DNA of 64,000 bases from Lepidodermella squamata (taxonomy: Eukaryota > Animalia > Gastrotricha). Position numbers and translations under genes: made by a program. The first letter of the stretch is position 1. Each line of letters begins with the position of its first letter. Below are positions 130 through 47,600 of this stretch, in pieces. The stretch is taken from NCBI GenBank assembly GCA_047495785.1, contig JBLDXI010000045.1, positions 558,001-622,000 on the forward strand. Reading direction: 5' to 3'. Below the pieces are notes generated by a model. That model worked only from the letters and a program-made list of their open reading frames with translations. It searched no databases and was not told where the DNA came from.

Positions 130-2727
130 TCAAGATCGAGGTGAGTTGCTAGCACCATTTATCGCTCCATTGATACCAGATATCGCTTGGGCGTATGCCT
201 GCGTTGCGGCTTGACGGGCCTCGGCCGCCCTCGTCAGCATCTCTCGAATCTGGCGCAGAATATCAGGCCTTCGATTCGCCAATTCAAGCGGCGACTCCCC
301 GGAAGCGCCAGTCGAAAGTGACGGATCAGCGTTGTTTCTGAGAAGAAAATCAACCGCCTCGAGTCGATTCCACTCCACGGCTGTGTAAAGCGGGCGTTGG
401 TAGTCGAAATCGTGGGTGTTCACATCGGCCCCGGCTGTTACCCAGGCCTCGAGTTGACTGACGTCGTTCTGGGCTGCTAAACTGCACAACTCGTGAGACA
501 ACTGCGTCGGCATCATATGCAAGTGAGCTCCCTTAAAATAACAACAAATAACAGTTATGTATCGAACGCTTCAGTGAACCAGCCCTAAATGCGATAAGGC
601 AAAAGCTGACAATGGTTTGGTGCGACCCTAATTAATATTGCACGCTGTCTGAACTAGATAACTATTTACAAGAGTTATCTAGAAATTTTGACGTGCCAGG
701 AAAATAACTCACAACAGTAAATAATACTCACCCCTCGTCTCAGCAATTCGATGATTTGAAGATGCCGACCTCGAACGGCATCTATTAAGGCGGTGTTTCC
801 GAAACGATCTCGGGCGTGGACTGGCGAGCCACGCTCGAGTAAAAATTTCACGCAGTCAGTCGAGCCGTGGCCTGAGGCAACGTGTAGCGGTGTCCGGTTG
901 TCATAATCCATCGTGGCGACCGAAGCACCCATCTCAACCATTGATTTCAAAACCCGAATATTATTATCTAAAATTTAAAAAAAAATCAAATGAAGAACTA
1001 ATAATTACAGCCAATTTCTCACCTTTCGCAGCCATGCACATGAGCGAAGGGTAAAGAGACTTGACCAAAACTTCCATGTCTTGCGACGAGCTGAAATTAA
1101 GGCCAAGTGAAGCCACAACACGGTGTAGGACATGACGCCGATCTGAGCTGTCACTCAGCGCCGAAGCGTCTTTACAATGCAGTTCGCCTCGTAGAGACCG
1201 CTGCAACATTTCTCGCTTAGTCGGCAAATCCCACTCATCCTTGCCGAGTACGTAGCTCAATTTCATCAAGGCACATTCTGGGGTCATATCATAGCCAGGC
1301 GTCACCCCCGCATCGATCAGCGCCCGCCCGGTTGCATAGAACGGCTCGACACCGCCCTTGTAACACTGAGTAATATTCAAAAATATCACACCTCGTTCTG
1401 ACGCTTCACGTATTGCTTTCAAAATATCAGCTCGAGAGTCAGGCCCATTCCCAGCGCCGTAGGTTTGAAGCACAATGCCTTTGATAGGCGGGCGGCAGAA
1501 GGCCTCGATCGTCTCAGCGGTCAACGTTGGGAACAATCTGAGCAAGGCGACATTTTGCGACATTCGCTTTTCGACCAGAAATTTTTCAAGAGCATTTTGA
1601 TTAAACAGCCCGGACCAATTCACAGTAATATCGACCTCAACCTCGGCCAGAGGCGTGCAGTTGGGAGACGCGAACGCACCGAAATTTGATGTGTGACACT
1701 TTGTAGCACAGCCTAAATGAGAAAATGACATAAAATCGATAATTTGTCACAGAGGAAAAACTTACAGCCTCTGAATAACTTATTAGAGAAGAAGATACAC
1801 ACTTCGGGGATACAGTAGTTCGCCGCAAGAGTTAGCGCTGCCAAAAAATTCGCCCTTCCATCACTCAGCGTCTCAAAAATAGGGATTTGTGAGCCAGTCA
1901 AGATGACAGGTTTCCCCAAATTTTCCAGCATGAATGCAAGCGCTGATGCCGTGTAAGCCATTGTGTCAGTGCCGTGCAGGACCACAAAGCCACTGTATTC
2001 TTCGTAGTGTGCCTTAATATCAGACGCGATTTTGATGTAGTCGGCCAGCACCATGTTGGAAGAGTCAAGCAGCGGGCTGTATTCGTAAACCGTGAATAAA
2101 ATCCTGCGGCCCTTCTTGTCCTCTGGCATAGCCAACAAATTGTACTCGATACTTCTATCAGAATTGATATGTGAGCCGACTTGAACAGGGGAGGCATTTG
2201 CGTATAAGAATGCAGTGTCGTCATTCGTTGCTTCGACAGGTGATGAGAGATCGCTAGCTAGAGCTTCTTGGTATGCTTTCGCAAAAATTGGGTCGTTAAA
2301 AATGGGTTGCTGGCATAGCTGATCTGTCAAATAGTTCGCTTTCGGTACATAAACACCGTTCTCAACTTTCATTCCCACAGTTCCTAAACAAAGCATTTTA
2401 ATAGAAATAAATAATTCGATTTCGCATAAATATACCTCCAGTATAAATAACCATAACCTTGGCAATTCGCTCCAATGAAAACTTCGGCATAGCAACTTTA
2501 GGTTTCTTCCGTACATTTGCAGACATCTCCGCGTCGAAACTGTTCATTCTTATCACAGATCGATTCAAATTGGGAGAAGTCGGCTCGCTATTTAGAGTAC
2601 TTTCTGATACTTGCTGAAGAGCTGGTACTGCAGCGGAAGGAGCATTCGATTCCGAAGCACCTTCGGAAGCAGGTCGATGAAGACGTTTCATTGGTCCATT
2701 AGTTGCAACTCTCTTAGTATCAAACAT
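130..2727 (-). CDS. ASPG: L-asparaginase (type I) with C-terminal ankyrin repeats / 60-kDa lysophospholipase; 5 exons (2436-2727, 1766-2383, 1023-1712, 732-967, 130-531)
   Basis: The spliced product has YTGGTVGM, LLDSSNM, HGTDTMAY, TGSQIP, FASPN and TYGAGNGP asparaginase motifs, then ankyrin repeats (DYDNRTPLHVAS, DRFGNTAL). All GT-AG junctions keep frame. Confidence 0.95.
555..697 (-). ncRNA. Box H/ACA snoRNA, copy 1, in the last ASPG intron (532-731); candidate guide for the 18S site equivalent to human Psi1367
   Basis: Hairpin-H box (AUAUUA)-hairpin-ACA+3 nt layout. The 5' pocket (AAUU / UCAGACA) is complementary to conserved 18S UGUCUGG-UU-AAUU. Paralogous to three copies at 3090-3858. 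Confidence 0.8.
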
Positions 2728-3089
2728 ATCTAGATACGTCGAGAGCAGCGGGAAAGATATAAATTATGAAAAAAACAGGCACGCGAAACGTTGCATGAAA
2801 GATTAGGTCAATTACACTCAACGTGATGTTGCATGTTAAGCGAAAAAAAACGAATACTCTAGATCCAACTACCATGATGCTATAAAAAATACTAATGCAT
2901 TCCGGGTGTTAATGCTCAAGTGAGCTAAGAGAATTGTAAGAAATGGTGGTGCGGTTTCAAGCCAAAATGGTGTAGTAAAATGCTTTAGTGAATCTCAATT
3001 CATGATTTTCCAATTCCCAATTCCCAGTTCTCGATGCAGCCGCCAATTCCGAACCATCGCCAATACCTAATAGAAAAGATAAAAGAGTG

Positions 3090-3238
3090 AATTGTAGCGA
3101 ACGCTTCAGTGAACCAGCCCTACGTGCAAAGCAAAGGCTAACAATGGTTTGGTTTGCATTTCAATATCGCGCGTTGTCTGAGCCCAGTAGCGATTTCTAA
3201 CCAGAGTTAGCAACGCCACGAGGCTGATTAAACGCGCA
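3090..3238 (-). ncRNA. Box H/ACA snoRNA, copy 2 (intron 3067-3273); H box degenerate
   Basis: Shares the 3' hairpin (AAACCAUUG...GGUUCACUGAAGCGUUCGCU-ACA) and the CAGACA pocket. The H-box position reads AUAUUG, which is imperfect. Confidence 0.7.
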
Positions 3239-3402
3239 GAGAGTTTTCAATGGAGACATAAACGGAAAAATACCTTTTAGAGTGTGCACTTTCATAGTTC
3301 GTTGGAACTTGTCGACGATAACACATAATATCGCAGAGTTTACGACCCACGAAAATTTTCAGTTGGCCACGATATCCACTGAGAACCTGAAAGAAAATTA
3401 CA

Positions 3403-3552
3403 ATATGTAAGCGACGCTTCAGTGAACCAGCCTTAAGTGCTAGGCAAGGGCTGACAATGGTTTGGTTGCTTCATTAATCTAGCGCGCTGTCTGAACCTGG
3501 TAGCGGTAAAGGTATCAAAATGACTCCCGGCTACCAAGGAATTAGACGCGCC
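3403..3552 (-). ncRNA. Box H/ACA snoRNA, copy 3 (intron 3387-3590)
   Basis: H box AGAUUA, terminal ACA, conserved pockets and compensatory changes in the upper stems. Confidence 0.8.
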
Positions 3553-3709
3553 ACAAGAAATAATTGCACGAAATTATTGGCTTGACTTACATTTTGTCAG
3601 CATTTATCCAGCAACAAACAACGATATTTCGACCCGTAATTGTTGTCGCGTATCCTCGACAAAGGCTAAGTGTACAACCTTAGTGGGCTGCACCTGGAAA
3701 CAAAAATTA

Positions 3710-3858
3710 AATTGTAGCGAACGCTTCAGTGAACCAGCCCTAAATGCTTTGCAAAAGCTGACAATGGTTTAGTGCGCCCTTTAGTGTTGCGCGCTGTCTG
3801 AGCCTGATAACGGTGATGATTAAACAAATAATCACGTTACCATGCAATTATACGCGCT
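3710..3858 (-). ncRNA. Box H/ACA snoRNA, copy 4 (intron 3694-3899)
   Basis: H box ACACUA lies 14 nt from the top of the 5' pocket. Terminal ACA-AUU. Stems GCGCG/CGCGC and CAGCUUU/AGGGCUG. Confidence 0.8.
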
Positions 3859-5060
3859 ATTTACTAGTTGATTGTTCCAAACGATTGAGAATGACAAACC
3901 TTCATTCGGTAGATGTGATGTGCACCATGAAAAGCTGTTAACAGCAGCAGCTTGAAGCTTAGCTATTCAACTGTATATCGCTTAACAATGAATGATGGAT
4001 AATGGCTGCTTCCAAAGGAGCCTTCGAAGGACATCAAGAGCAATGATCATACAGCTACGAGTAAAGGTTTAATGATGAACTGAAGAGAAGGCATGATTAG
4101 AATACTGTAGTTGCACCCTCGCGAGCTATGGGCCGATCGACGTGCCACGTGGTTCAGCGGAGAGGACGAAAGCATGCTTTTCCTAAGGAGGTTATCTTTG
4201 GAATGAGCCCAAAACAGCTGATGCAACACCTTAAACGAGCAACCCACCCTAAAAACTTTTTAACTTTATAATTAAATAATTCATCAAATCTTTTTATTTA
4301 TAATAAAAATAATTAAAAATAGCAATGCATTTATTTGCAATATTATATGTTTGAAAAATATTTGAATATTTCGGTTGGGAGGGGTTCGCGGTGTTTTTGA
4401 ACTTATTTGGTCGTAATAGTGCTGCAACCTGACTATAGCTCTGAGCCAAGTTTCTTCTTCTAATCACCGGTTACTTTTTGAAGGAATAGCAATGCACCTG
4501 GTTGACATTTTATCAAATTAATCTCAGCTTTCCATTGAAACGGGAAACGGTATCACAGTGGAACCAAATAGGGAATGTCGGAAACGTCGATACATCTACT
4601 GCTCCTGTTTTTTCATTCAATTAAAATTGCTGTGCATTATTTTTGCTGACCTGAAAGAATTTAGCTGCCAGCTTTTTTGAACTTACTAATCGCATAATTC
4701 CAATATGTGCCCAGGATTGAAGTTTTCGGCATTGAGGTTGAGGCGCCTGGCGACCATAAGCACCCAGCATGTTTTCATATTTAATATCGCTGTCTCGGGG
4801 ATACTTACTTATCTCCTTCAAGATTATTTCAATTTTTGCTGCTACTTGGGATCCTACGAAAACGCCGTAGTTATTGGTTGCTATTAGCTCGATGCACGAC
4901 TCGTTATAGCTGAAGTGCAATGCTCCATAATGATAATTCGTTCATAATTTTACATTTGTTAACTAAAAAGCTTGATATCGCTGACAACACGAAAACAAGA
5001 TACTATGCAGCTGGAAGTAACGAAATTTGTTTATCCCGTTATTTATAGGACATTTATTAA

Positions 5061-28316: not shown

Positions 28317-29213
28317 TCAATCGAGCTCATCGTCAAAATTGCAGTGGGTTATTTCAACCTCGCCGAATTCGAACGGCTTGATGAATTGATAAGCATTTGC
28401 GTCGCTTTTACTCGTAATTGCCGGTTTGAAAGATATCCCAGGAATAGGCTCGTCCAAACTCGACGCGACTTGCATTCGAAAGTTCATCAATTCATCGACA
28501 TTCAGGTCGCGAGTTGACTTTTGCCGCAGCGATTCAAGCTGCGATTTCAGCCGTTCCGAACTTTGGCAACACGCCGCGTGATACTCGGCCATAGCCGCCT
28601 CCACATCTTCCACAGCCTTGCCTTCAATCGCAATGATTTTCGCGTCGAAAACGCGCCGAATATCGTCCAGAATTTTAGCCGTGAAATCTTTCAGATGGCA
28701 GTGCAGTTGTTCGAGGTCGATTTTTTTCTGCGCCTCTGCATTCGCCGATCTTTGCTGCGGCGTTGGCACGCTTTCGTAGAATTTGATAACATCTTGCCGC
28801 AATTCTTCGAGGTGAACAAGCCGGCAAGGCTGGCAGAACGTTACGAAGCAGTGTTTACATTGCTGCTTAGCAACGCCGAAAATGTGCTCGCAAGATTTGC
28901 CGCTCGCTTGATTATTTTCTTGAAGTTCGAAAAATTCTACGACCTGTTTCAGGCCGATGTTGATGTGATAAGCCGAGACGCCGTTCGGGCTGACGCGGCT
29001 CTTTGCTCGGCAACTTGGGCAGATTATGAAAGGGCGTGATTCATTGGACCGGTCAATCGGCATTCGAGAGAGACATTCATCGCATAGAGAGTGGGAACAT
29101 CCGGGTAAATGTCGAGGATTCCGGTAGTAACATAAGCAAATCGGACATGTGATTCGAGAACGAAAATCCTCAACAGCATCGGCCGATGTCGAGGATGAAG
29201 GTTGATCAGTCAT
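28317..29213 (-). CDS. Intronless TRIM/RBCC E3 ligase (RING, B-box-like, coiled coil)
   Basis: C3HC4 RING CPIC..LPGCSHSLCDEC..CPSCR, then CEH..CKHC..FCQPCRLVH and a helical C-terminus. Confidence 0.85.
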   Translation of the reverse strand: MTDQPSSSTSADAVEDFRSRITCPICLCYYRNPRHLPGCSHSLCDECLSRMPIDRSNESRPFIICPSCRAKSRVSPNGVSAYHINIGLKQVVEFFELQENNQASGKSCEHIFGVAKQQCKHCFVTFCQPCRLVHLEELRQDVIKFYESVPTPQQRSANAEAQKKIDLEQLHCHLKDFTAKILDDIRRVFDAKIIAIEGKAVEDVEAAMAEYHAACCQSSERLKSQLESLRQKSTRDLNVDELMNFRMQVASSLDEPIPGISFKPAITSKSDANAYQFIKPFEFGEVEITHCNFDDELD

Positions 29214-29516
29214 CGCAAAAATTGCGCTAAGAAAATATTCTAGTCCAGTAAAACAGATAAATCATAACGATGAGGTGAATGAACTGTCATGGTAGATAGA
29301 TAAATAGCTGCTTGCCTCGTCATTCAATACTCTACATACAACCACTGGAATTATGGGTTTTACGTGTGTGGAAAGCACAACATGCAAATTACTATACACG
29401 AGAAAAAACAGCTACTGAGCAAACAACACGCGCCATTTCCGAGAACACTGAAGCTAGTCTGTGCCACGTGTTGCTCAGACCGTTTTCGACTGCGTCCATT
29501 GAAAAAATTGAAGCTC

Positions 29517-31419
29517 TGCCCCCTGTGAGGATCGAACTCACGACCTCCAGATTATGGGGGTTATGTTGGAATCTAGCTTAAACTTTCCGTATCTTTTCCT
29601 AAGTTAGGCTAAAACTTGAGCCGAGATCTTTCTAAATATCCAATTACTCCGGGACACTTTTCTAGTGTTGTCCTATATCATTTCTAAAACCAATTGTTGA
29701 ATCGTCCCTTTTTAATTTTCAATGTGTCATCTGCAAGAAGCAAGTGAGATTATGGAATATAATCTAGAACGATTGAGTTTTTCAGCAGCATTCTTCCGCG
29801 GTGTCAATATGATAAAATAACTAGGTAGATGGTAGATAAAAAAGTTGATAGGATTTCACGGCTATCCAGTTGGCTATTTATTATTATTATTGTTATTAAA
29901 TGATTCAGGAATTATACACGTTTAGAATCTCGACGGCCTACCGGAGGCAAGGCTGGACAATCAGGACCGAGGACTATTTCTTTGTAAATTGTAAATTAGC
30001 TAGCCTTGAATTTTGATGAAAAAATTTTCCGCCGACGATGAGACGACTGAATTATGATGGCTTCTCGCAAACACCACCGAGGAGCCATGTCAACGAGGCG
30101 ACGAGGCATTAATTATAAGAACATGAATCTCCATGCTTGAATTTGAAAATTTTTAAAATCATTTCATCAGTAGGTATGCCCTGGAAAAAAGGGACAACCC
30201 ATAGTTACGAAACAGTGAGACGAGGCGGCCGCGTTGCTGCACCATGCCAATACAGTTCGTCATTTCTAGTTCTCGCGAGAAGTATTTTTCAACTATCATG
30301 CGAATTGGCAAAAGTTCTCTCTGAATTTGCCATTGAGCTGGGGAGAATTCATGGCCACCTAGCTGTTATTGTTCAGGTGAATTAAGCTTCTGTTGAATTT
30401 TGAATTTTTTTGCATTATTCTTCTCAAAAAATGTAGTTGGGCATGAATGGCCTAAAATTCATGAAATCTGCAGCTGATCTGAAGCTAGTCTATTTTTGTG
30501 CCTCGAAGACGTACATAGGTAATCAGTATAATCGTAATCGGTTAGATATTAGTGAATACCGGTGCATCATGGCGAAATCCAGCGCTTCAGGAATTCGGTC
30601 AACTGGGCTGAAAACCCAATGAAAACCCACCTGATACATTCCATTATGATTACGAAATATTGTTTATGTCTCTAAAATTCTTAACCTCATTTCTTAATGA
30701 CCTGAGCGTAACAAAATAAACTGGGGCAATTTAATTTGATTTATAAAGTGGCGTACGGGGCGGATTGGGGACAATAATATATAACAATTCAATGCCTGAA
30801 ATAATAATTTTTCAGCGGTCCTGAGCGGGGAAAAATTAGTTCGCCAATTATATCGAAATATTGTAATATTGAATAATAACTATTTTGCGATAAATTCAAC
30901 GCAGAAAACGTTTATCATTGACCGATCGCAAACGAAATAGTCGGGACCGTCGAGAAATATTGCGAGTAATATTACAGCCGAAAATTTAGATTTTTTATTG
31001 ATAATATTGGAATGAAAATATCATAACGCACTTTCAACTTTTCGAAATTTTGAATTCCGCGCCATCGAGCAATGGCGCTATAAGACGCGCCATCCGCCGG
31101 TTGGGCCGTAATACCCGTTTTTTTGTAAACCTCCTCGTACATGGTTTGAAAAATTCTGAGTTTAAACCAGGTTTAGCGGATAAAACCTCTAAAACCTGCA
31201 AATTTTCTCTCATTGGTACATAGGTTTTTTAATCGAACATAGGAATTTTCTTCTATTGCTCCATTTTATATACGCGAACAATGGTGAGTCCCAATACGCA
31301 ACAATGGTTGCTTTGGAAATGAGAGGAAAACTTAAACCTTAAACCTTAATCCAACATAAGGAAGGTTCCAACATACGCCCCTATGAGACTGGCGCTCTAG
31401 CCAACTGAGCCAAGGAGGC
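29517..31419 (-). pseudogene. tRNA-Met(CAT) elongator gene split at the anticodon by a 1826-bp insertion (5' half 31382-31419, 3' half 29517-29555)
   Basis: Joining the halves and removing one TAT copy gives exactly the reverse complement of the intact tRNA at 38875-38948. Confidence 0.95.
29556..31381. mobile_element. Non-autonomous DNA transposon (GG-terminal TIR, 3-bp TSD; PIF/Harbinger- or Zator-like) inserted in the tRNA-Met anticodon
   Basis: TIRs GGGGGTTATGTTGGAATCT vs GGGGCGTATGTTGGAACCT. TAT is duplicated at 29553-29555 and 31382-31384. Subterminal CCAACATAA repeat. No transposase ORF inside. Confidence 0.88.
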
Positions 31420-38271: not shown

Positions 38272-38874
38272 TTCGAAGTTGGCGGCTTTTTTTTTAGCGG
38301 AATTAAGTTTTAGCGGAATGATTTTCGGCCTAGAAATCGACCGGTATTTATAGCCTCGGTTGTGGGAACTAGCCGAGGCTGAATCTTTTTCAGGTCTAAG
38401 TGCAGCCTGATAATTACGGCTGAGTGGTTCCACCTGGTGGGTTTGAACCGAAAAAACAGCACATATTTGTTATCAGCAACCGTCTTGAGAACGCGGAAAG
38501 ATAGGTTTTTGGCAATAACTCGTGGCGGCCGAATGAAGAATTCTAGAAACTTCTAGAACGTCCGTCGAATCTGGAGCATGAAAAACAGAACCAAGTCACG
38601 AACAATGATTCATCAAATATTAAATTGAGATTTTTCATCAATCAATCAAGGGCCACTTATGTGAGCATTACTCTGAAGGTTGCCCTGCTCAACCCGATCA
38701 GAAAGTTCACGATTTGTTTGCATTTCTTGAGGAAATTTCTGAAATGTAAGCTTCGATTTATTTTCATGCAGAATTTTATTTCTATTTCAGCGGCTGAAAA
38801 TCAGTCGAAAAAAGGAAGAAATGTCTAGACTTATTTTATTATGATCGCCAATCGCCAATCGCCAATCGCAAGCA

Positions 38875-38948
38875 GCCTCCTTGGCTCAGTTGGCTAGAGC
38901 GCCAGTCTCATAATCTGGAGGTCGTGAGTTCGATCCTCACAGGGGGCA
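38875..38948 (+). tRNA. tRNA-Met (CAT), elongator, intact
   Basis: Acceptor stem GCCTCCT/AGGGGGC, anticodon loop CTCATAA with the U31-U39 pair, T loop TTCGATC, and a T5 terminator 9 nt downstream. Confidence 0.97.
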
Positions 38949-44600: not shown

Positions 44601-47600
44601 TCAATGTATTTACGAAGCGAGTTTGAGAGATGAGTCGATAACGACGGAGTGACGCCTCCCGCCGGGGTTTCGCCGCGGCTCTGATAGTCACGCATCATTT
44701 GAGTCGTCAGCCAGGCGAGGCACAGGCCAGAGGTTTTGTGGTTTTTGTTGAGACTGACAGTGATTGCGGAACCTATTTTCGAGTCGGCGTACATGGCTGA
44801 GCCCATAACAACAGAGTCTTTGAGCCTCGATGAGCTCTCGACGTTATGGTGTTCGTTAAACGAGCCGCATGCGATGTTGCCGTTTCGATCCGCAGCAATT
44901 ACATGCATGCTAAGGAAAAAAAGAAATGACAATTTCGAATTAGTTACTTTCGAAAAATAACATTCAGGATAAGAGAAAATTAATTTAAGCTCTGAATTTA
45001 ATGGGATGCAACCATATGAAATTCGAAATTCGATTTCTGAAATTACGCGATAATCGGTATAATTCAAAAGGTAATAATCGGTAATTTACACAAAAATAAC
45101 TATTCTTGCATAGTTTTCAAGATTTAAGGAATAGGCACGAAATATTCAAAATTTGACGATACCGTAACGCGCCCTAAATTTGGACACCCTAAATTTGGAC
45201 ACTTTGAGCTTTAGCCCCAAATTTCAATTTGCGCATAACTGATAAAAATTTAGAAATTTCACTGAAAAATAGCTCCTTACTGGGCTTTCCAACGATACCA
45301 AATTTGCCTATACTTTCATATACTATCGATTTGCGAAAAATCGCCGAAGCTCGATCACTCAGAAAGAAGTTTTGGGACCCCCCTTGCCAAACGCTCACCT
45401 GTGAACGGTTGGGGCTGAAATTTTTTTTGCACATAGAAATGTACCTAAACTAAAGGGTCCCCCACAGAGCAGCAGGCTTCAAAGCAGGGAAAACGCACTA
45501 AACAGTCCTCTCAGCAAGCGCTCAGGCTTAGCCTCTGATTTTCAACCAATCGACTAACATGATGGTCAGCTATTCTAGCTTTTCACACCAAAAATTGAGG
45601 AACATAAGTCATCAAACCTCCGTAATATGACTCAGACCTCACTTTGGTCGAAAAAGTCGTTTTTCGACATTTTTTCAAAATTCATAAGCCGGACTACTTA
45701 AGTTATGATGAGTCCATATTCAGAAAACTACGCCGAATTTTATCGTAATTAATTCGATTTATGGTTGCGTGGCGTTTGCACCGCTTTTTGAGTTTATCCT
45801 GCTTTGAAGCCTGCTGCTCTGTAGGGGACCCAAACTAAATGCTGTAAAAAAATCTCGGCAGTTGGACGAGCCAATTTTTATACAGGTGACTTTGAATTAA
45901 GGCTCTAAATTTGGACACTTTTTCGCCTACAAGCATGAAAAAAAAACTGCGGCAATTGAAAACTGAAAATATATAGAGTAAATAAAAAACATATAATATT
46001 TTGAATAATATTTTAACAACAATTTAAATATTATTTTGCGTTTTTGACACGCAGTTTACCCGGGAAAATCTTTTTTGGCAATCCGTCTTGGCAATGATCG
46101 TTGACGAGAAATCATGAAGTCTTATCTGAACTTTAACTAGTCATAGCAGTTGAGATCTTCAAAGAGGAATCTGTCAACGAACTTCAAACCCTTTTTAACA
46201 CTATTTAACGTTTTAACGTTTAACAATCGCATATTTGTTTAGAAATTATACTAAATATGAATAATATACTAGCTTTATTGATTTTTACCGGCCTACTGAA
46301 CTGTGGACTAGCTAAGAAGTACAAATTCTCTGCAGAAGATCTTCAAAATGCAATTTACAAGGTACAGACGAAGCAGTTGTCGCTACGGAGAGCTGCGGAA
46401 GTCTACAAGATTGGCAAATCAGATCTATTTAACAAGATTCATTCTTTACATCTGCGCCCCATCGGCCGCCAGATGTCCTTATCTGCTGAAGAAGAGGATC
46501 ATTTGACCTCAACCATAAAAACTCTTCAGCTGTGGAATCATCCGATGTCCCGTGAGGATGTCATTAACCTCGCGAGTCGTCTTGCTGGCAAGGACTTGGG
46601 CGTCAAATGGTTGAGGGAGTATAAGAAAAGACACCTTGACCTATCCGAACGGGTGCCTAGTAATAAACCTGTGCAACGTAACCATATGAACAGTCACAAC
46701 TTGATCAGACAACGGTTTGAGACCCTAAGGAAGATCCTGCCTAATAACCTGCCTGCCAGAAATGTAGTCAACCTTGATGAGACTGGCATTCGCCTTGCGT
46801 ACGGGTCAGGAAAAGTGTTTGCTATAAAAGGAACGAGTCGTGTCGATCAAAATGTTGACGGCAGTGAAAAAGACGTCGTTACAGTGTTGTTCGGCGGAAC
46901 CGCATCCGGAATCTCAACTCCGCCGTTGGTTATCTATAACGGTAAAACCGGTGATGCGAACCATATGCAGGGTGGACCTGCTGATACTCAATACACTGTT
47001 TCTGAGAACGGCTGGATGACCGACGACAACTTCTATTTCTATTGTAAGAATGTTCTTTTCCCGTTTTTGAAACGAAATGCCGATCCGAAATTCAAGATAT
47101 TTGTGTTATGGGATGGCCATATATCTCATATAAGCCTTCGTCTTGTCGACCTCGCTATAGAAGAAAATATTGAGCTGTTGTGCTTCCCAGGAGGCAAGAC
47201 CGACTTGCTGCAGCCTCTCGATTTAACGGTATTTGGCCCTATGAAGAAAGAGTGGCCAAAGATAGTAAACTGATCGGAATAGTTCGAAGCGATCTCAAAA
47301 ATGGGAACGGCAATAAAACCCGTTTAATATGGTTCTATGAAGTTGAAATTTTGAGTTATGCAAGAAAAAAGATACGCGATCATTTAATAAATTTTTAACA
47401 TCCTCAAAAGTCTCTTCACTAATTCCAAATAATTTGTATAATGGCTCCAATTTTAATGGCCATGTGACAGATGTCTAAACTAGTAAATCAGTGGATAAGT
47501 ACCTCAAAGGCCAAGTGTTGTCGAAGATATAGGTGTCCTCTTGCGAACTCGTAACCGATTCAGCCGAAGACGAAGAATGAGTCGAGGGTTCTGCTTTCTC

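Follow-up and report, generated by a model that had tools for sequence, protein, structure and literature searches.

A putative non-autonomous TIR transposon splits an elongator tRNA-Met gene in the anticodon loop in Lepidodermella squamata

The window analyzed here is a stretch of 64 kb of Lepidodermella squamata DNA. Its minus strand contains an elongator tRNA-Met(CAT) gene (31419–29517) that is interrupted by an insert of 1826 bp (Table 1). Nucleotides 1–38 of the tRNA (31419–31382) and nucleotides 36–74 (29555–29517) are 100% identical to the uninterrupted gene at 38875–38948, and their order is kept. The triplet ATA (Sprinzl positions 35–37) is found on both sides of the insert and once in the intact paralog. 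This anatomy is directly observed. It agrees with the first-pass annotation, in which the insert was described as splitting a tRNA-Met gene into two halves identical to the intact copy, with a target duplication (TSD) of 3 bp at nucleotides 35–37. A U31-U39 apposition and a normal T-loop, read directly in the sequence, mark the broken gene as one of the elongator type.

The gene at 38875–38948 is the sole intact tRNA gene in the window. The broken and the intact copy also agree over 9 nt of upstream and about 15 nt of downstream sequence. A 7-nt repeat (3.7 copies, 38844–38869) is located immediately 5' of the intact gene and is absent upstream of the broken one. The T6 terminator downstream of the broken gene suggests that this copy was functional before the insertion. 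The interrupted copy is almost certainly disabled and now a pseudogene. The insertion had also been described as recent. It is probably young, but in a loose sense: the halves and the intact copy show no differences in 73 nt, which limits the divergence to <4%.

Table 1. Features of the interrupted tRNA-Met gene, its insert and the intact paralog.
Feature	Position	Strand	Remarks
5' part of tRNA-Met(CAT) gene with A box and anticodon	31382–31419	-	Sprinzl 1–37; exact match to nt 1–38 of the intact gene
TSD copy 1, final 3 nt of the tRNA 5' part	31384–31382	-	
Putative non-autonomous TIR element	29556–31381		1826 bp; GC 0.38; no ORF of 100 aa, no recognizable transposase; single copy in the window
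TIR adjoining the tRNA 5' half	31357–31381	-	begins GGGGCG
Subterminal repeats	31329–31358	-	TIR core present once more, TATGTTGGA; short run of TTAAG(GT) units
First T4 run on the tRNA strand	31327–31330	-	possible Pol III stop; 52 nt inside the insert
Two open stretches in the same frame, with a 60-nt GT..AG segment between them	30119–30619 (30119–30376; 30437–30619)	+	possible gene remnant, unsupported
TIR adjoining the tRNA 3' half	29556–29580	+	begins GGGGGT
TSD copy 2	29553–29555	-	ATA on the tRNA strand, TAT on the plus strand
3' part of tRNA-Met gene with B box	29517–29552	-	Sprinzl 38–73; exact match to the intact gene
T6 terminator downstream of the broken gene	29502–29507	-	read in the sequence
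Intact paralogous tRNA-Met(CAT) gene	38875–38948	+	proxy for the empty target

The TIRs of the insert have a length of 25 nt and are imperfect. With the TSD read as 3 bp they match without gaps at 20 of 25 positions and at 15 of the 18 terminal ones. A match of 15/18 at the exact ends has a chance probability of about 2e-6. In the 64-kb window the terminal motif of the TIRs is present at these two sites alone (0.12 expected). If the TSD is read as 2 bp or 4 bp, the ungapped match drops to 8/18. Thus, the target duplication is most likely the 3-bp ATA/TAT. Readings with a TAA target or a 2-bp TA duplication were dropped, because the ends of the element become asymmetric.

A duplication of 4 bp (CATA/TATG), which had been noted as possible, is formally allowed with a gap in the TIR alignment and would place the element in a group with 4-bp TSDs, such as Sola2. 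CATA flanks the insert on both sides, and an indel of 1 nt within a G run is a common change. However, this reading reduces the ungapped TIR match from 15/18 to 8/18, and the extra base agrees by chance in 25% of cases. Sola2 elements have 4-bp TSDs and GRG termini. Their TIRs are usually long, which speaks against this reading. A 4-bp TSD is therefore a tentative alternative that we consider rather unlikely. It would alter the classification of the element, not the question of targeting, and is compatible with an untargeted insertion.

Inward of the TIR that adjoins the tRNA 5' half, subterminal repeats are present (Table 1). Repeats of this kind are often regions of transposase binding. Both TIRs contain a B-box look-alike in which the position of C56 is changed to G (29565–29573 and 31364–31372). 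Sites with one mismatch to the B box occur at 2.9 per kb and strand in the window, and the look-alikes in the TIRs amount to about a 1-in-10 coincidence. The first five bases of the element (31377–31381) resemble the 3' acceptor strand of the tRNA and pair with the tRNA 5' end in a predicted fold. This pairing is no better than that of shuffled sequences (z -0.5).

The insert contains no ORF of 100 aa and no credible match to a transposase domain. A Pfam search with 20 six-frame fragments of the interior gave matches at chance level (best E-value 0.011 for a SPOC-like domain; DDE_5 with 0.29), and an Rfam search of the insert returned nothing real. The three longest plausible pieces of the insert had no credible match in sequence or Atlas searches. 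Remnants of DDE or Myb/SANT genes, such as autonomous PIF/Harbinger elements carry, were not found in the insert, nor was a coding remnant of an ISAzo13-like transposase, the type of Zator. The two open stretches in the same frame (Table 1), each searched singly, have no credible homolog. Two HMMER matches of an interior piece of 86 aa are artifacts, in which weak scores were summed across tandem-repeat proteins. The 31-nt end of the element had no match among metagenome contigs, and the element had none among phages. Two viral matches to the TIR pattern are preceded by TAT and ATA; they lie within intact phage genes, have no partner repeat and are regarded as chance matches. The same applies to 45 prokaryotic matches to the TIR pattern, which have no paired TIR and random flanks. 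Judged from its sequence features, the insert is a non-autonomous TIR (cut-and-paste) DNA transposon.

Elsewhere in the window, a MITE of 377 bp (45455–45831) has TIRs of about 52 nt that begin with GGGTCCCC; it is flanked by an 8-bp duplication, AAACTAAA. By the length of its TSD, we take it to be Merlin- or hAT-like. A pogo/Tigger-like ORF with HTH_psq and DDE_1 domains is located at 46257–47273. It was rejected as a partner of the insert, since the TIR motif of the tRNA-interrupting element is absent nearby. A single-exon ORF of 298 aa encoding a RING-finger protein lies on the minus strand at 28317–29213, 300 bp behind the broken tRNA gene; a homolog search with it returned none. The ankyrin protein of the window has distant matches only. 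Four related repeats of ~130 nt are present on the minus strand (555–696, 3090–3216, 3403–3551 and 3710–3794). Their Rfam matches to the H/ACA snoRNAs SNORA42/80 and SNORA15 are weak (E-values 0.004–0.8, below the gathering score). They are probably a cluster of paralogous snoRNA genes.

The element was compared to transposon groups with similar features. Dada elements are DNA transposons that insert into tRNA genes near the anticodon (PMC3706591, PMC8869645), and Dada families cluster around the anticodon (PMC8869645). They have TSDs of 6–7 bp and no TIRs (PMC3706591, PMC8869645), whereas the present element has TIRs of 25 nt and a TSD of 3 or at most 4 bp. Accordingly, the earlier exclusion of Dada holds. 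Furthermore, Dada elements have subterminal repeats and a specificity proven by multiple copies, in contrast to the one copy found here, which has no transposase. No repeat of the Dada type, mirroring the target in the subterminal region at equal distance from the TSD, was found in the insert. A Dada derivative might be considered, as internally deleted Dada copies exist and the superfamily targets tRNA genes, but the length of the TSD and the TIRs speak against it. An assembly or amplification chimera could be suspected as well, since whole-genome amplification often precedes the sequencing of tiny animals. Matched TIRs together with a TSD and both tRNA halves in order are not expected from such an artifact. 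Both explanations are highly improbable.

Like PIF/Harbinger and other PHIS groups (PMC4482050), the element has an AT-rich TSD of 3 bp and TIRs shorter than 60 bp that begin with G, and these groups include non-autonomous derivatives. Short TIRs that start with A or G are a feature of PIF/Harbinger, and the agreement is weakly diagnostic. However, PIF/Harbinger duplicates TWA, and the TSDs of the PHIS groups are TWA, AT, ANT, CWG and TNA (PMC4482050). The ATA/TAT of the insert is outside of all of these, and a TAA one base away was left unused. With Zator the element shares a TSD of 3 bp and a TIR length of about 25–33 bp. In amphioxus Zator-1, the family compared here, TIRs of 33 bp and duplications of TAA/TTA were described (PMC12905397), whereas the insert has ATA/TAT and no transposase remnant. 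The assignment to PIF/Harbinger or Zator in the first-pass annotation is doubtful, as ATA/TAT is not TWA and the adjacent TAA is unused. By inference, the best candidate for mobilizing the element is a transposase of the PHIS-like or Zator-like type. Like the present insert, Pokey, a piggyBac element in 28S rDNA (cited in PMC3706591), has TIRs and a short AT target and resides within a multicopy RNA gene. For Pokey, a preference for one rDNA site has been shown; for the present element no such preference is evident.

The insert can be placed at position 37/38, the canonical site of tRNA introns, and this placement had been considered meaningful. The tRNA-Met gene is GC-rich. Its AT-only triplets are just ATA, TAA and AAT, and all of these lie within the anticodon loop. 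The TSD leaves the insertion point ambiguous across four boundaries, and each of the three triplets, if hit, yields an insertion readable as 37/38. The insertion described here can be read as 37/38 and equally as 34/35. Because all AT-only triplets sit in the loop and each of them reads as 37/38, the position speaks neither for targeting nor for a resemblance to introns. Whatever element with a short AT-rich target enters this gene, it will seem to occupy the intron position; for the present family, the AT preference is taken from this one site.

True introns at 37/38 are present in seven loci of a near-identical elongator tRNA-Met from other eukaryotes (L001–L007 on contigs of the JAABU series; L001:4915–5000). 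These loci were obtained by scanning metagenome contigs with the host tRNA sequence, comprise three variants and have 26 nt exactly in common with the host gene. Their introns are 29–30 nt long. The position readable as 37/38 is shared by the insert, these loci and canonical eukaryotic introns (10.1101/497545). However, the canonical introns have a length of about 30 nt and a pair to C32, whereas here 1829 nt intervene, no such pair is present and terminators are found inside. The base facing C32 (the third-last intron base) is A in the insert and G in 7/7 true tRNA-Met introns, including all three variants. In fly cells, splicing drops sharply when the base-32 pair is broken (10.1101/497545). 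The insert contains 23 runs of at least four T on the tRNA strand; the first T4 is the one listed in Table 1 and the first T5 is at 31153–31149 (+229). The distance between the A and B boxes is 1875 nt, compared to 46 nt in the uninterrupted gene. Displacement of the B box by this distance should prevent the assembly of TFIIIC.

The gene would still be functional if the insert were a giant tRNA intron that is transcribed and then excised by TSEN. Apart from the placement at 37/38, this idea is compatible with a predicted fold that joins the two TIRs and keeps the acceptor and anticodon stems. In addition, intron stems of at least 8 bp aid the splicing of reporter introns (10.1101/497545). Opposed to this are the A opposite C32, the 23 T runs and the separation of the two boxes, and a functional gene of this kind is scarcely credible. 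Splicing of the insert is very unlikely, because the C32 pair is missing, T runs occur early and the B box is 1.8 kb away. In this respect the first-pass annotation, which listed a T4 run ~50 nt inside the insert and the lack of a C32-G anticodon-intron pair as arguments against splicing, is probably correct.

Two other suggestions made there were not borne out. The first was that the TIR could pair back with the anticodon arm. Among random 20-mers taken from the window, 9% pair with the arm as well as the TIR does (-6.8 kcal/mol), and the predicted fold of the full precursor has the TIRs paired to one another and not to the anticodon arm. The second was that the insertion may be a model for the birth of tRNA introns. 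Through the TSD, the anticodon recurs at the 3' junction as a direct and not as a complementary copy, which differs from canonical 37/38 introns. That the splitting of tRNA genes by mobile DNA seeds introns has already been proposed (PMC3293823). In Caldiarchaeum, a tRNA-Thr gene is likewise split by mobile DNA (PMC3293823). That case is archaeal, the mobile DNA encodes a recombinase and an intact gene is restored, whereas in the present case the gene is simply broken.

The best reading, and a probable one, is that the element inserted without targeting at the one AT-rich site that the gene offers. The DDE transposase that mobilized this non-autonomous element would be encoded at another place in the genome. 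A staggered cut of 3 nt at ATA/TAT (positions 35–37) and subsequent repair would have duplicated the three bases. What made the site suitable would have been its short AT-rich sequence, perhaps together with open chromatin, and not its location in a tRNA gene. The broken copy would then be silenced, with the B box 1.87 kb from the A box and oligo-T runs stopping Pol III, and TSEN would find no anticodon-intron pair in it. The loss is presumably tolerated because an identical tRNA-Met gene is located 7.5 kb away. The AT preference of the family is read from a single TSD, and this argument is partly circular.

A rough base rate yields 0.1–19 chance insertions in anticodon loops genome-wide, assuming 1000–5000 tRNA genes, 1000–50000 insertions and about 127 Mb. 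The low end of about 0.1 applies to young elements only. Thus, one insertion in an anticodon loop is expected, or nearly so, by chance. De novo insertions of Mu and P enter tRNA gene regions at background rate (PMC7337890), so untargeted insertions into tRNA genes do occur.

Alternatively, the element may belong to an undescribed, non-Dada TIR family that targets the anticodon loops of tRNA-Met or of several isotypes. Such a family might recognize a longer target sequence or be tethered to TFIIIC/Pol III, with the multicopy genes as a safe harbor, and would resemble Dada in its mode of action but not in its anatomy; both the family and this mode of targeting are unlikely. The clean insertion within a gene of 73 nt would fit, as would the precedent of the Dada families near the anticodon (PMC8869645). 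The TSD matches no listed PHIS group, so the element is not obviously part of a known family. However, one copy is at hand, the identical gene at a distance of 7.5 kb carries no insert, a Dada-like subterminal repeat mirroring the target is lacking, and the center of the TSD misses the dyad of the anticodon stem by 1 nt. No second copy of the element was found within the 64-kb window. As had been cautioned, one insertion cannot prove targeting, all the more so at the only AT-rich spot of the gene.

As it stands, the untargeted insertion is an ordinary event in which a transposon made a tRNA pseudogene. It is of small value in its own right: the clean comparison with an empty site fixes the ends of the element, and the ATA/TAT duplication is unusual. 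Even a targeted insertion would be a poor model for the birth of tRNA introns unless splicing were shown. In a literature search, Dada was the one eukaryotic DNA transposon found to insert inside tRNA genes. If other copies of the present element were located in anticodon loops, this would point to convergent safe-harbor targeting and to a site-specific integration enzyme. The targeting of tRNA genes would then have arisen twice independently among eukaryotic DDE transposons, the second time in a family unrelated to Dada.
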